Source: Octopus bimaculoides
Taxonomy: Eukaryota
Assembly (NCBI RefSeq): GCF_001194135.2
Contig: NC_068982.1
Span: 111,749,475 to 111,803,901 of the forward strand
DNA length: 54,427 bases
Reading direction: 5' to 3'
Positions 34,295 to 49,225 of the stretch are shown one piece after another; within the stretch, counting starts at the first letter, position 1, and each line of letters begins with the position of its first letter. Below the pieces are notes generated by a model, which worked only from the letters and a program-made list of their open reading frames with translations, did no database searches and was not told the origin of the DNA. Position numbers and translations under genes: made by a program.

Positions 34295-34923
34295 NNNNNN
34301 NNNNNNNNNNNNNNNNNNNNNNNNNNNNNNNNNNNNNNNNNNNNNNNNNNNNNNNNNNNNNNNNNNNNNNNNNNNNNNNNNNNNNNNNNNNNNNNNNNNN
34401 NNNNNNNNNNNNNNNNNNNNNNNNNNNNNNNNNNNNNNNNNNNNNNNNNNNNNNNNNNNNNNNNNNNNNNNNNNNNNNNNNNNNNNNNNNNNNNNNNNNN
34501 NNNNNNNNNNNNNNNNNNNNNNNNNNNNNNNNNNNNNNNNNNNNNNNNNNNNNNNNNNTATGTATATATATATATATATATATACATATATATGCGCAGA
34601 GGTCCACACCACATACATATATATGCATATATAATATATATGTGTATATATATATATATTTGTGTGTGTGTATATGGATCTATACGTGTGTGTGTGTGTA
34701 ATTGAATATATATATATATATATATATGCCTTTGTGTGTGTGTTTTTGTGTTTTTTGTATTTATATTTTTAATCGAAGTGAAATATATCTATGTACATGC
34801 AATGGCTACATGTTCATATCTACTGACATAGCGTTTAGTAACAGATGATCATTAATAATAGGAATTTGTTATTTATTATGCATATTTGCATGCATTTCTT
34901 TATAATGTATACATATACATGGG

Positions 34924-34970
<47 letters not shown>

Positions 34971-35862
34971 CACACGCGCAATATGTATATATGAATGTGT
35001 GTGCATTTGTATGAGTTTATTTGGGAGTGAGACAGTTGAAACCAAATCTTAAACTAAGACAAAGAAAAAACTAGTCTTAATTCAATTATGAAATTAACTT
35101 CAAAATTGTCATTAAGACATCCTGTAAGATTGCTAATAATGTTGTTGTTTGTTGTAGCAGCAGCAGCAATACTAGTAGTAGTAGCAGTAGTAATAGTAAG
35201 AATAGTTGTTGTATGTATGGTGCTGGTATGTAATAGTGGTAGTGGTAGTAATAGTAGTAGTAGTTTGCATTATTTATAATTTCCCTACATTGCCCCATTA
35301 TAGATTGAGTCAGAAACATGTAAGAAAACATGATCTTTCTGTTGTGACTTCTCTTCAACACTTATATGTTTGGTCTTGTACTATTTGTGCAATTGGTGTT
35401 CTTATAGTGTATTATGCTGACCGTCATTACAGATAGGAAGTTTCTCTTTAAGACCTAATGTTCTATCAATGTATGTGTATGTTCATGTTTGTTTATGTCT
35501 CAGTCACAGTGTTAATCTGATATTACTAACCGTATATAATGATTATTTTTCATATCTTTTACTGTTCATTTGATGCCTATTAACTTCCTTTCCATTTCAC
35601 TTGCCTATTGTATATTCTCTTTCTCTAGACCTTAACATTCTTGTCCTGAGTAACCAACCAAATATTTGGCAGAATTTTTACTTGATGATATTTTTATTAC
35701 AAGAATAATATTCTACGTTTATGGTTTAATCAATCCAGTGAAGCAAATCAACTCTAGATTTTTTTCCTAATCTGTTTTGTTATGTATGTATTAAGAGGAG
35801 AAAAATGTTTACGTAGCTTCAGTTGCCAGTATCTTTATGGAATGAAGACTCACCCAGCCTTA

Positions 35863-35974
35863 TTTATTTGAAATGGTTTCTTAATCCTATGACTAAAGTT
35901 AATAAACAAAAAATTAACTTTCATTCTATTAATCTGTTAGTTTAAAACACTTTGGATGTTTTTAAAAATTTATT
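35863..35974 (-). other. Candidate poly(A) signals of the innexin transcript
   Basis: AATAAA on the minus strand at 35974-35969 (overlapping the extension's TAA) and at 35868-35863. Confidence 0.35.
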
Positions 35975-36194
35975 TTGGTATAGTTTTTTTGGGCTGTCCG
36001 CAGCTAGTTGTGTTGCCTTGGCAATACCCCAGCCGAATTTCGTTTGACTCGCGACATATCTGTTGTTGTCGCTGTCCTTTGAGTGCCCTTCCTGATAAAA
36101 GGACACCGTGTTCGGCCTCCACGGGCCATAGCAGGCGTAACAAACGTGAGTGTTGTTTGAGTTGAAGAAATTTGATAAGGTGCCTGACGGCTAG
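35970..36194 (-). CDS. Candidate stop-codon readthrough extension of the innexin (74 aa after the TGA)
   Basis: TGA at 36197-36195 followed by CTAG; frame stays open: LAVRHLIKFLQLKQHSRLLRLLWPVEAEHGVLLSGRALKGQRQQQICRESNEIRLGYCQGNTTSCGQPKKTIPK*, TAA at 35972-35970. Confidence 0.4.
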   Translation of the reverse strand, partial: LAVRHLIKFLQLKQHSRLLRLLWPVEAEHGVLLSGRALKGQRQQQICRESNEIRLGYCQGNTTSCGQPKKTIPK

Positions 36195-37398
36195 TCAGAC
36201 GTTACTGTTGTCGTCGCTAATGGGGTTGGCGTGCCGAAAAAGTGGCTTGTTCCGGTAATGGTTCCACAGTTGAAGAACAAGCTCGGATACCAGCACGTCA
36301 TTGGCGTTTTTGCCTACAAGTCTCAAAACAAATATCCCATCATGCCTTAAGTATTGATCCGCGAATTTCACCGCCATTTTTTTATCCAGTTCTGTCTTGT
36401 AACATTCGTTCACTCTCAGGAACTTTTTCAGATATCTAATACGGTGTTGGCGGAATACCATTGCATAAAACCATATCAGAAAATTGCCGGCACTAAAGGT
36501 TGAAACAAACACTAACCAGAACCAAATGAAAATAAAAATCTTCTCATTGAATAGGTTGATGGGTAGCACACACTGTACAGTGTATTTATGAACATTTTGC
36601 ATCTGGCGAATTTCAAAGTCACACATCGTCACACGTGGGAATCTAGGAGACTCCGTCCAGTCATCTCCATTGGCTAAGTGACTCAGGACTTCAAATCCGT
36701 ACAGATTATAGTTTGTGCCTAAAAATTCATTCAAAATGAAAAGCTGGCCTACAGCATTTCCCATGTAAAAAATCTTGATAACCATGTAGATAATAAAGAG
36801 GTAATTTCCATAGCGTTTCCCCCACACAATGCAACAGTATTTCGATAGAGTCTGGCGCATTCGTATGAGGCAGCCCGATCGATATTCCCTGGCGTTTTCA
36901 AGCCAGCGGTCCATATATCGGACTATATGTTTGATAGTTCTCTCTCGATCTTCAGGAGCCACAAATTGGGTGTCGGCTGCTAACGTAACAATCTTATCCA
37001 GGTTTACGCCTCCGGAAGCACCAAGGATCCTCCACAATATACAAGGAACTTTAAATAACAAGGCTTGGAAGAGAAGGATCATGGGAACCCATTGATAATA
37101 TCCGATCTCCTTTTGCTGTTTTCCCTCCCGGTGCAAAGGTATTCGCTCCTCAAAAGGAACGTAGTACGTGTTTGATATCCAACACACGTTATTGGCATAA
37201 TCCCTGTGTCCGGAAGTAAACTGTGCAGGACACCAGCAGTGAATCGGTTCCCCAACATACTGCTTGGTGCTCACAACAATTGTGAAAATAATAAATATTA
37301 TTGTCGTGTAAAGGTGATTTAACCGGTCGATCCAGTCATCGTCGTAGCGCCCTTTCAAGCGAGCATAAGTTGCAAAACTTCCCAACACACTGTCCAGC
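36195..37398 (-). CDS. inx: Innexin (invertebrate gap-junction protein, unc-9/unc-7-like), main coding exon
   Basis: Open frame of about 400 codons with innexin hallmarks: DDDWIDRLNHLYT, QYVGEPIHCWCP, CWISNTY, YYQWVP, FPRVTMCDF, CVLPINLFNEKIF and four hydrophobic segments. The exon starts after a polypyrimidine tract plus AG (AG at 37400-37399) as G|CTG GAC AGT GTG = phase 2, x-L-D-S-V-L-G-S-F. The ORF-track start at 37388 is a GTG, not an ATG. Confidence 0.97.
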
Positions 37399-37963
37399 CT
37401 GAAAAAGAAAAAAAAAAAGATATTAAATTTCTATCTCTTACTGGATTTCCACATATATTACACAATTTAAAAGATATTGAATTACATTTCATTTTACATA
37501 ATAATTTTATCCAAAATATCACTATCTTTTAAAATAAAATTGATACATTAAAGATGTAGACTTATTTCTTCATTACAATTATTGTTCGTAAAAAATCACA
37601 TGCAAGCACATTTAAACAAAATACGTACATAATATCAGTTGAGAAATATATACATAAATATATTAATCAAAATATACAGTATTAGAGATCCATTACAGGC
37701 GATCAGTTTCGCACCAGATATTAAATAACTGAACAGGTATGTATCTAATACACGTCCTCTTCAGAGGCGGCAAGTATGGAAAAAATCCCACGACTCTTGT
37801 AGTATTTGATAACCGCTCGGTTATCCAATAACCCGTGCGAAATCGATTGGTAAGCTCGGCTGTAATGAATCTATAATACTATACACTTTGACTAATATAC
37901 CAACTCACTTGCCAAATATAAGAGTGCCAGAGTGCCTATATTGTCTGATTTATGGATTCTTAG

Positions 37964-48463: not shown

Positions 48464-49091
48464 CGTATGTATGTATGTGCATGCGTATACGCTTTTCTGT
48501 GTGTATATCTATCTATCTATTTGCATACCATTTTTTGCAAATATAAACGGTACAAAGTGTTTAGGCAATATTTATATAGATTGCATTTGTAGAAACAAAT
48601 ATTATATACAGACTATGTTAGTTTTATTCCGGGAGCTATTACAGAAAAACTCATTAATAGTTTTTAGATCATTAGACTGTATTTTTTAATCGAAAGTTTC
48701 CAGAATTTATAAGAAGCAAGTATATTCATTCTTAGGCTATTGCCGTGTATTAAGAAGTGAATCTTTAGATATTACACATAAAAGGCTTCGGAAAGAAACA
48801 CTTCGCTTAGAAATACTCTACTGAATATTTGCTAAGCACTTTGTACTGTATAGTTTTATTAGAAGGTGGTAAAGAGTTAAATTACTGGAATGTTTAATTT
48901 ACGATAGAATCAGTGACTGTAGGAACTGTAAAACATGAGGATTGTAGCTTTGTAAGGAATGATGATGGATCAATCTCATAAAAGTTCTATAACAATAAAC
49001 AAAACTTAGTTTCCAAATCGTGATTGAAAAAATATGAAATATGATTTTTGTAATTATTCTGCAACAATCGATGCAATAAAAGAAAACATAC

Positions 49092-49225
49092 CCCTTTTTA
49101 GCATCCCCTTCAGGTGAGGGCAATTTTAAATTGAGTTCCTTTAATGACTTCAGTGCCGACAAATTTGGCCATTCTGTCTTTTTCTTTAGAGCACTTTGCT
49201 GCCCGTTTGGTATCAAAGAATTCAT
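49092..49225 (-). CDS. Candidate innexin first coding exon D (44-aa N-terminal extension)
   Basis: ATG at 49225, 134 nt (phase 2), donor AGG|GTATGT; MNSLIPNGQQSALKKKTEWPNLSALKSLKELNLKLPSPEGDAKK-G. The ORF turns intron-like in composition right after the donor. Confidence 0.3.

Follow-up and report, generated by a model that had tools for sequence, protein, structure and literature searches.

Stop-codon readthrough that is conserved as a functional feature of cellular genes is well documented in insects and in a handful of vertebrate genes. Among the latter, UGA_CUAG and UGA_CUA are documented autonomous readthrough signals, giving 6-17% readthrough in OPRL1, OPRK1, AQP4 and MAPK10 (PMC5868278), and MDH1, LDHB and VDR share the UGA_CUAG context; in the four PhyloCSF-positive genes, the coding signature extends to the next stop (PMC5868278). 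In AQP4ex, the readthrough isoform of vertebrate aquaporin-4, the signal is conserved across a large clade and adds a 29-codon cytoplasmic C-terminal extension that controls anchoring and localisation of the channel (PMC6444679); for this isoform there is reporter, antibody and knock-out evidence. The leaky UGA-C or UGA-CUA(G) context is also used by alphavirus nsP3/nsP4 and other viruses, although the viral cases often depend on a 3' RNA structure. In insects, "ancient" readthrough genes shared by Drosophila and Anopheles are enriched for TGA and a 3' C, and their readthrough regions evolve faster than the first ORF but remain under purifying selection (Jungreis et al., PMC5100048). No innexin gene name appears in the text or text supplements of that paper, and we found no paper that links readthrough to innexins, gap junctions, octopus or molluscs. 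The C-terminal SAYV motif of connexin-36, a gap-junction subunit of a family unrelated to innexins and one for which no readthrough is known, binds ZO-1 PDZ1 at electrical synapses, tying the channel to a scaffold (PMC7179694, PMC8081524).

Here we analyzed a 54,427-nucleotide stretch of Octopus bimaculoides DNA (GCF_001194135.2, contig NC_068982.1, positions 111,749,475 to 111,803,901; hereafter the window), in which an earlier note, based on the sequence alone, had proposed that an innexin gene ending in UGA-CUAG is read through into a 74-codon in-frame extension. All of the sequence statements in that note were reproduced. The features of the locus are as follows, with positions numbered from the first letter of the window:

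49091..49225, minus strand: one of several alternative first coding exons of the innexin gene (MNSLIPNGQQSALKKKTEWPNLSALKSLKELNLKLPSPEGDAKKG), with 43/45 residues identical (tblastn) to the N-terminus of the Octopus vulgaris/sinensis isoform P0125
37399..37400, minus strand: splice acceptor AG preceding the common coding exon, with a poly-pyrimidine tract upstream, reading ...ttttttctttttcag|GCTGGACAGTGTG; all isoforms join at x-LDSV with a codon ending in G
36198..37398, minus strand: common exon coding for the innexin core, ending ...NPISDDNSNV, a C-terminus of class-I PDZ-type form (S-N-V)
36195..36197, minus strand: first stop codon, TGA, putatively leaky
36191..36194, minus strand: CTAG immediately 3' of the stop, completing the UGA_CUAG readthrough context
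35973..36194, minus strand: 74-codon in-frame extension, LAVRHLIKFLQLKQHSRLLRLLWPVEAEHGVLLSGRALKGQRQQQICRESNEIRLGYCQGNTTSCGQPKKTIPK
36117..36194, minus strand: most conserved part of the extension, its first 26 codons (LAVRHLIKFLQLKQHSRLLRLLWPVE)
35991..36005, minus strand: SCGQP motif near the end of the extension
35970..35972, minus strand: second stop, TAA, marking the end of the coding-like signature
35969..35974, minus strand: AATAAA hexamer overlapping the second stop, one of 7 AATAAA/ATTAAA hexamers in the next 1.4 kb

The innexin ORF (37388..36195, minus strand) matches Pfam Innexin PF00876 over residues 17-378 of 397 and over profile positions 1-333 of 333 (E=4.3e-105). The core protein is 100% identical to Octopus and Argonauta "innexin unc-9" isoforms and 78-83% identical to gastropod, bivalve and chiton orthologs. 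All public annotations of this gene stop at SDDNSNV, and the S-N-V end is present in all orthologs. The minus strand reads GTC TGA CTA GCC across the stop, and frame 0 then remains open to the second stop. GC content is 88/180 (0.489) at 36001-36180, compared with 12/60 (0.20) at 35881-35940 and 0.274 at 35700-35969. The length of this open frame is, by itself, weak evidence: the probability of 74 open codons is 0.029 at uniform or local composition and 0.00075 at the composition of the AT-rich flank, while a separate calculation gave 0.0089, and, as the earlier note had cautioned, the other two frames are also largely open in the window. Frame +1 hits the TAG inside CTAG and is then open for 84 codons, and frame +2 is open for 62 codons.

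To determine whether the extension evolves as coding sequence, we compared the window with orthologous DNA from other molluscs. In the nine lineages for which DNA could be retrieved, which do not include congeneric Octopus, Argonauta, Haliotis or Nautilus, a TGA followed by C is found at the homologous position. The context is TGA CTA GCC GTC in the window and in two other coleoid cephalopods (L001 and L017), TGA CTA GCC GTT in a metagenomic relative (L018), TGA CTA ACC in an oyster (L004), a venerid-like clam (L008) and a caenogastropod-like snail (L011), and TGA CAA in a chiton (L009) and in a further lineage, L010. Thus, seven lineages have TGA-CTA, while CTAG is confined to the cephalopods and L018; the bivalves and the snail have CTAA, so that the motif class of the vertebrate genes is only partly shared across the phylum. 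L001 and L017 are unnamed SRA assemblies and could in principle represent a deep paralog rather than orthologs, although this would not change the selection argument.

The core proteins of L001 and L017 are 100% identical to that of the window, although synonymous sites are saturated (pS 0.72 between the window and L001). Within the extension, 25 of the first 26 residues are identical between the window and L001, with 11 synonymous changes (pS 0.56, pN 0.034). The first 47 codons align without gaps and differ by codon position [10,3,28], whereas frames +1 and +2 show no synonymous excess and carry stops in L001. Over the whole extension, differences by codon position are [17,10,40] for the window and L001 (p=9e-6, pN/pS 0.27) and [21,11,44] for the window and L017, with p about 1e-5 and pN/pS of 0.27-0.28 across the two comparisons. 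This constraint is far weaker than in the core (pN/pS below 0.01), a relationship also seen in the ancient insect readthrough genes. The SCGQP motif is kept in the other cephalopods as SCGQP or SCGQT, on the far side of a 31-35 codon in-frame length difference.

Furthermore, a nucleotide alignment of L001 and L017 showed that the coding-like signature ends at the second stop. Indels inside the extension are 15 and 3 nt, while those after the second stop are 2, 30, 23 and 37 nt. Identity is 91.4% in the core, 84.0% in the extension and 73.6% in the UTR, and mismatches by codon position are [9,0,93] in the core, [13,8,30] in the extension (p=1.7e-4) and [23,15,20] in the UTR (p=0.48). In the window, GC content falls from 0.49 to 0.22-0.27 at the second stop, beyond which the sequence no longer aligns to the other cephalopods; attempts to align it to their UTRs gave only TA repeats and an insignificant 15-mer. 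Extension ORFs of 37-109 codons are open in every lineage (Fisher's combined P over 7 lineages, 5.6e-6).

These results make it unlikely that nothing is translated and that the open frame arose by chance, with the conservation reflecting a regulatory 3' UTR element or a feature on the opposite strand. While the largely open frames of the window and the GC-richness of the region, which resembles that of many conserved UTR blocks, could be taken to favor this view, the periodicity and synonymous excess appear in frame 0 only, indels preserve the frame and the signature is lost exactly at the second stop. With synonymous sites saturated between the window and L001, an untranslated sequence would not keep 25/26 encoded residues while changing 11 third positions. 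The plus-strand ORF 35956-36165 is not supported by this periodicity.

The similarity of the extensions is not limited to cephalopods. The first 14 residues, in an alignment anchored at the stop, are significantly similar to those of oyster, venerid-like clam and L018 (p from below 0.0002 to 0.002 for most pairs between classes), and the extensions of oyster, clam, snail and L018 begin alike (L[AT]V[RH]K...). Conversely, the chiton and L010 extensions are not demonstrably homologous to the others. The feature is therefore wider than the cephalopod innexin described in the earlier note, since it is shared with bivalves and gastropods. A profile search with an alignment of four tails returned only one hit (P0187) and missed known clusters, a search with the octopus extension alone found nothing, and no credible Pfam domain was identified in the extensions.

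Six spliced transcript contigs from two cephalopod species carry the TGA and the extension contiguously, which bears on two alternative routes to an extended protein. The first, that A-to-I editing converts the UGA to UGI, read as UGG (Trp), with the minus-strand A at 36195 as the edited base, must be considered because coleoid cephalopods recode mRNAs on a massive scale (cited in PMC5868278 and PMC4384741) and because a coding signature indicates only that the extension is translated, not how. However, all six contigs read TGA, at consensus level and without read data that could exclude low-level editing. The TGA and extension are also conserved in bivalves and a gastropod, which are not hyper-editors, and what is conserved next to the stop is the readthrough context CUA(G/A). 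In addition, a 5' G neighbor, as in UGA, is probably the least favored by ADAR, so that UAG would be the expected codon if editing were the selected route. Folding of 120 nt from the stop revealed no notable local duplex (z = -1.0, +0.25 and +0.64 in the three cephalopods). We consider editing improbable, although it is the strongest of the alternatives.

The second route, an alternative splice or exitron that joins the coding frame to this region without the stop, could be suggested by the many alternative first exons of the gene, by the AG within CTAG and by the resemblance of TGACTAAC in bivalves to a branch-point consensus. However, amino acid conservation begins at the very first codon after the stop, in frame with it, and an acceptor there would need a donor inside the invariant single-exon core. 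The sequence around the stop (AAC|GTCTGA) is a poor donor, and all six contigs are colinear through the stop. This explanation also appears unlikely.

An in-frame conserved TGA followed by conserved coding sequence is also the signature of a selenoprotein. However, no SECIS or any credible Rfam family was found at E<=1 in 34700-37500 of the window or in five ortholog loci (L001, L017, L008, L018 and L012) that include 0.5-1.6 kb of 3' sequence; the only hits were TA-repeat "miRNA" noise. None of the nine lineages has a Cys codon (TGT or TGC) at this position, the position is not in a redox-type motif, all annotated orthologs terminate here, and the conserved S-N-V end is itself a plausible functional C-terminus. 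We regard selenocysteine as very unlikely. Likewise, no shared or unusually stable fold was found 3' of the stop that might act as a readthrough stimulator (z-scores from -1.6 to +1.9).

Taken together, the comparative evidence suggests that this is probably an ancient programmed UGA readthrough, in which a fraction of ribosomes decode the UGA with a near-cognate tRNA, the inserted residue most likely being Trp, Arg or Cys, and translate the 74 further codons, although translation of the extension is inferred from sequence evolution and not from ribosome footprints, peptides or reporters. The reading offered in the earlier note is thus supported: none of the refuting outcomes it named for the sequence comparisons (orthologs with TAA/TAG or lacking CTAG, frameshifting indels, or no frame-0 codon signature) occurred among the cephalopods. 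Compared with AQP4ex, the predicted product is likewise an oligomeric membrane channel subunit with an added cytoplasmic C-terminal extension behind the same UGA-CUAG, but the protein family, phylum and extension sequence are unrelated and the extension is longer. Compared with the insect genes, the split spanned here (cephalopod, bivalve and gastropod, probably Cambrian) is deeper than that between fly and mosquito. Peptides diagnostic of the extended protein would be FLQLK, LLWPVEAEHGVLLSGR and the junction peptide ...SDDNSNV[W/R/C]LAVR in octopus, and MDTSSNGYLR and NEQFETEV in oyster.

In the extended subunit, the normally free S-N-V would become internal. The extensions of oyster, clam, snail and L018 end in a second motif of class-I PDZ-type form (ETEV, ETEV, VTSV and ETAV, respectively), while those of cephalopods, including the window, end in a Lys-rich tail (TIPK or LIKK) without such a motif, so that in the octopus the effect would be masking rather than exchange of the ligand. 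Our best guess is that readthrough acts as a translational switch of the tail that the subunit offers to cytoplasmic scaffold or trafficking partners, but this idea rests on motif form only, and no PDZ partner of this innexin is known to us. If real, the extension would add an unannotated proteoform to one of the most conserved mollusc innexins and extend the UGA-CUA(G) signal to Lophotrochozoa. More tentatively, it is possible that a readthrough dating back to the common ancestor of cephalopods, gastropods and bivalves lets neurons or other cells set, at the level of translation, which tail an electrical-synapse innexin presents: S-N-V in the canonical form and, in the readthrough form, a different ligand in bivalves and gastropods or a basic, Thr-rich tail in cephalopods. 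This would be the first recoding event described in any gap-junction protein, among the oldest conserved cellular readthrough events, and a new regulatory layer for electrical-synapse assembly.

Other properties attributed to the extension in the earlier note were only partly upheld. The description of the tail as basic is correct (+5 net charge in the first 24 residues), but its description as amphipathic is not supported, as the helical hydrophobic moment is 0.27 and 75% of shuffles reach this value. The suggestion that the transcript ends just after the second stop is not supported by the two other cephalopods, in which transcripts run at least 220-330 nt past it, and the AATAAA over the TAA is not special, as five AATAAA and two ATTAAA lie within 1.4 kb downstream in this AT-rich DNA. 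The lysines at the end of the cephalopod extensions are not at the canonical -3/-4 or -3/-5 positions of a dilysine ER-retrieval motif.

Interestingly, an independent gene caller had translated the oyster, clam and L018 genes straight through the TGA as "W" in Logan-derived proteins. As the DNA reads TGA, this W is neither a genomic TGG nor an editing product but a genetic-code-4 gene call, and the downstream frame evidently scored as coding. Gene callers that switch to genetic code 4 on eukaryotic contigs emit W at such stops, a behavior that could be mined to find other readthrough candidates.

The minus strand of the window carries a 397-codon ORF that is a full-length innexin (Pfam PF00876, E=4e-105, profile 1-333/333), ending ...NPISDDNSNV, beyond which the same frame stays open past the stop codon. 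The features of this locus are as follows:
49225-49091, minus strand: an alternative first coding exon of the same innexin gene, 11.7 kb upstream of the common exon
37398, minus strand: start of the common exon, behind an AG acceptor
37388..36195, minus strand: the 397-codon innexin ORF
36197-36195, minus strand: the TGA stop codon, followed by CTA, G
36194-35973, minus strand: 74 further codons in the same frame, LAVRHLIKFLQLKQHSRLLRLLWPVEAEHGVLLSGRALKGQRQQQICRESNEIRLGYCQGNTTSCGQPKKTIPK
35972-35970, minus strand: the TAA that ends this extension
35974-35969, minus strand: the AATAAA within which this TAA lies

The GC content is 88/180 at 36001-36180 and 12/60 at 35881-35940, exactly the hand counts of the earlier note, and is 0.27 in the 270 nt after the second stop. 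The chance of finding 74 open codons is about 0.03 at uniform or local composition and 0.00075 at the composition of the flank. However, the caveat raised in the earlier note, that the other two frames are also open, holds as well, because frames +1 and +2 are largely open in the window, and we consider the window alone suggestive but not convincing.

The best database match is a cluster holding the 'innexin unc-9' isoforms of Octopus bimaculoides, O. sinensis, O. vulgaris and Argonauta hians, all of which are 100% identical to the window over the common exon and are annotated as ending at SDDNSNV. These isoforms differ only in alternative first exons, with public annotations listing at least nine different N-termini spliced onto the same core; the first exon at 49225-49091 is 43/45 identical to the O. 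vulgaris/sinensis version. The next-best matches are orthologs in gastropods (Haliotis and Babylonia, 83%), bivalves (Mercenaria 80%, Saccostrea 78%) and a chiton (79%), while other octopus innexins are only about 51% identical. This is a mollusc-wide and very strongly conserved innexin, and every ortholog ends in ..(D/E)DNSNV.

To determine whether the extension evolves as coding sequence in other cephalopods, we compared the window with six spliced transcript contigs, from six sequencing runs, that encode the identical core. These contigs fall into two sequence types, one comprising L001, L002, L003, L015 and L016, and the other L017 alone. They are not from the species of the window: synonymous sites between the window and L001 are saturated (pS 0.72, with 169 of 182 differences at third positions), yet not one of the 397 residues differs. 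Considering both coleoid types (pS 0.72-0.79), this 100% identity of the core (36198-37388) represents an unusually extreme level of purifying selection for a membrane channel. Both types read TGA CTA GCC GTC AGG, exactly like the window, and their frame stays open for 105 and 109 codons.

Against this saturated background, the first 26 extension codons encode 25 identical residues while carrying 11 synonymous changes, and the first 47 codons, which align without gaps, differ by codon position [10,3,28]. Conversely, when the same nucleotide alignment is read in frames +1 and +2, there is no synonymous excess, and those frames contain stops in L001. Over the whole extension, the counts are [17,10,40] (p=9e-6) and [21,11,44] (p=1e-5), with pN/pS 0.27-0.28. 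Furthermore, a plain nucleotide alignment of L001 with L017 gives the classical picture, in which the coding signature is lost after the second stop.

Nucleotide alignment of L001 with L017 by region (identity; indels in nt; mismatches by codon position)
Core: 91.4%; none; [9,0,93]
Extension: 84.0%; 15, 3; [13,8,30], p=1.7e-4
After second stop: 73.6%; 2, 30, 23, 37; [23,15,20], p=0.48

Beyond its own second stop, the window no longer aligns with either species. Although a 15-nt TGTTTTAAAC(A/T)AACA block occurs downstream of the second stop in all three cephalopods (window 35935-35949, minus strand; L001 about 2100; L017 about 1896), it lies at different distances and is not significant on its own (E=0.06). 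The earlier note, which had proposed stop-codon readthrough producing a C-terminally extended innexin, had named such a comparative result as support for the idea, and none of the comparative outcomes it listed as refuting occurred.

We next asked whether the feature extends beyond cephalopods. Some database proteins from oysters, a venerid-like clam and a metagenome run straight through the stop with a 'W' (loci L004-L008 and L018; proteins P0010, P0158, P0178 and P0187). However, the DNA shows TGA in each case, and the loci are flagged as not translating to the query under the standard code. The W is therefore not TGG but a genetic-code-4 gene call on Logan and JGI contigs, made because the gene caller switched codes where the frame continues to look coding; such calls on eukaryotic contigs could be mined as a by-product screen for readthrough candidates.

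Stop codon, context and extension in non-cephalopod lineages (stop and context; codons; start of extension; end of extension)
Oyster (L004): TGA CTA ACC GCG; 48; LTAHKLLKLVKSQ; FETEV
Venerid-like clam (L008): TGA CTA ACC GTA; 49; LTVRKILGILKAQ; SETEV
Caenogastropod-like snail (L011-L014): TGA CTA ACC GTA; 76; LTVRKWKLVQNV; LVTSV
Metagenomic relative (L018): TGA CTA GCC GTT; 72; LAVVKVCRMLTLQ; AETAV
Chiton Liolophura (L009): TGA CAA; 37; QIVQKGRFVDKIT; AEIM
Unidentified taxon (L010): TGA CAA; 45; QATEHLANIKASL; YANL

When the alignment is anchored at the stop, so that it has no freedom, the first 14 residues are significantly similar among cephalopod, oyster, clam, snail and L018, but not significantly similar for chiton or L010. 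ORF-length probabilities per lineage are 0.001-0.096, and combined over seven lineages they give 5.6e-6. The stop, its CUA context and the translated sense of the downstream frame therefore predate the split of cephalopods, gastropods and bivalves, although this rests on comparative evidence and not on a demonstration that the extension is translated. In L018 (755-1100), the roughly 90-nt segment encoding the end of the extension (...HQVIRQPNGRLSKEAETAV*) recurs in tandem two more times, with variations, after the second stop, and one copy again ends ...AETVV followed by TAA.

With respect to mechanism, UGA followed by CUAG, or more broadly CUA, is one of the best-characterized autonomous readthrough signals, giving 6-17% in OPRL1, OPRK1, AQP4 and MAPK10, and is also used by alphaviruses (PMC5868278). 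We found no shared or unusually stable RNA structure in the 120 nt after the stop in nine lineages (z-scores range from -1.6 to +1.9), and the signal is probably the short context alone; TGACTARCCG is conserved at the nucleotide level. Incorporation of selenocysteine at the UGA is disfavored, as no SECIS was found at 34700-37500 of the window or in five ortholog loci, and there is no Cys-codon homolog. The Rfam comparison did yield spurious sub-threshold miRNA hits, such as mir-297 and mir-466, which are produced by long (TA)n and (CA)n microsatellites that flank nearly every run of N (assembly gaps), at window 34905-35018 and many other sites. Splicing around the stop is likewise disfavored, since the six spliced transcripts are colinear through the stop and conservation starts at the first codon after it.

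The only serious rival in a cephalopod is A-to-I editing of UGA to UGG. However, several points argue against editing as the main route: (i) the transcript consensus is TGA; (ii) the feature is shared with bivalves and gastropods; (iii) the conserved neighbor is the readthrough context; and (iv) a 5' G is probably the least favored ADAR neighbor. Low-level editing cannot be excluded without reads.

While stop-codon readthrough itself is known, full-text searches found nothing on readthrough in innexins, gap junctions, octopus or molluscs, and no innexin name appears in the insect readthrough catalogue that we could search. Both the gene family and the phylum would be new for this kind of system, and the conservation is unusually deep.

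Since innexin termini are cytoplasmic, the extension, if translated, is a cytoplasmic tail. No Pfam domain matches it credibly. Its start is basic (+5 in 24 residues), in agreement with the earlier note, but is not amphipathic beyond chance, contrary to what was suggested there. The invariant canonical end S-N-V has the form of a class-I PDZ ligand, which readthrough would make internal. In four non-cephalopod lineages, the otherwise divergent extension ends in another class-I motif (ETEV, ETEV, VTSV, ETAV), while in the three cephalopods it ends ...SCGQ(P/T)..K without one. The most economical reading, which remains an inference, is a translationally set ratio of two subunit forms with different scaffold or trafficking interactions, by analogy with AQP4 versus AQP4ex (PMC6444679) and with the Cx36 SAYV-ZO1 interaction at vertebrate electrical synapses (PMC7179694).

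Elsewhere in the window, a 138-aa ORF at 1772-2188 on the minus strand looks like a mariner/Tc1-type transposase N-terminal fragment (helix-turn-helix). Pfam gives only a sub-threshold HTH_11 match for this ORF, so it is probably a decayed transposon.
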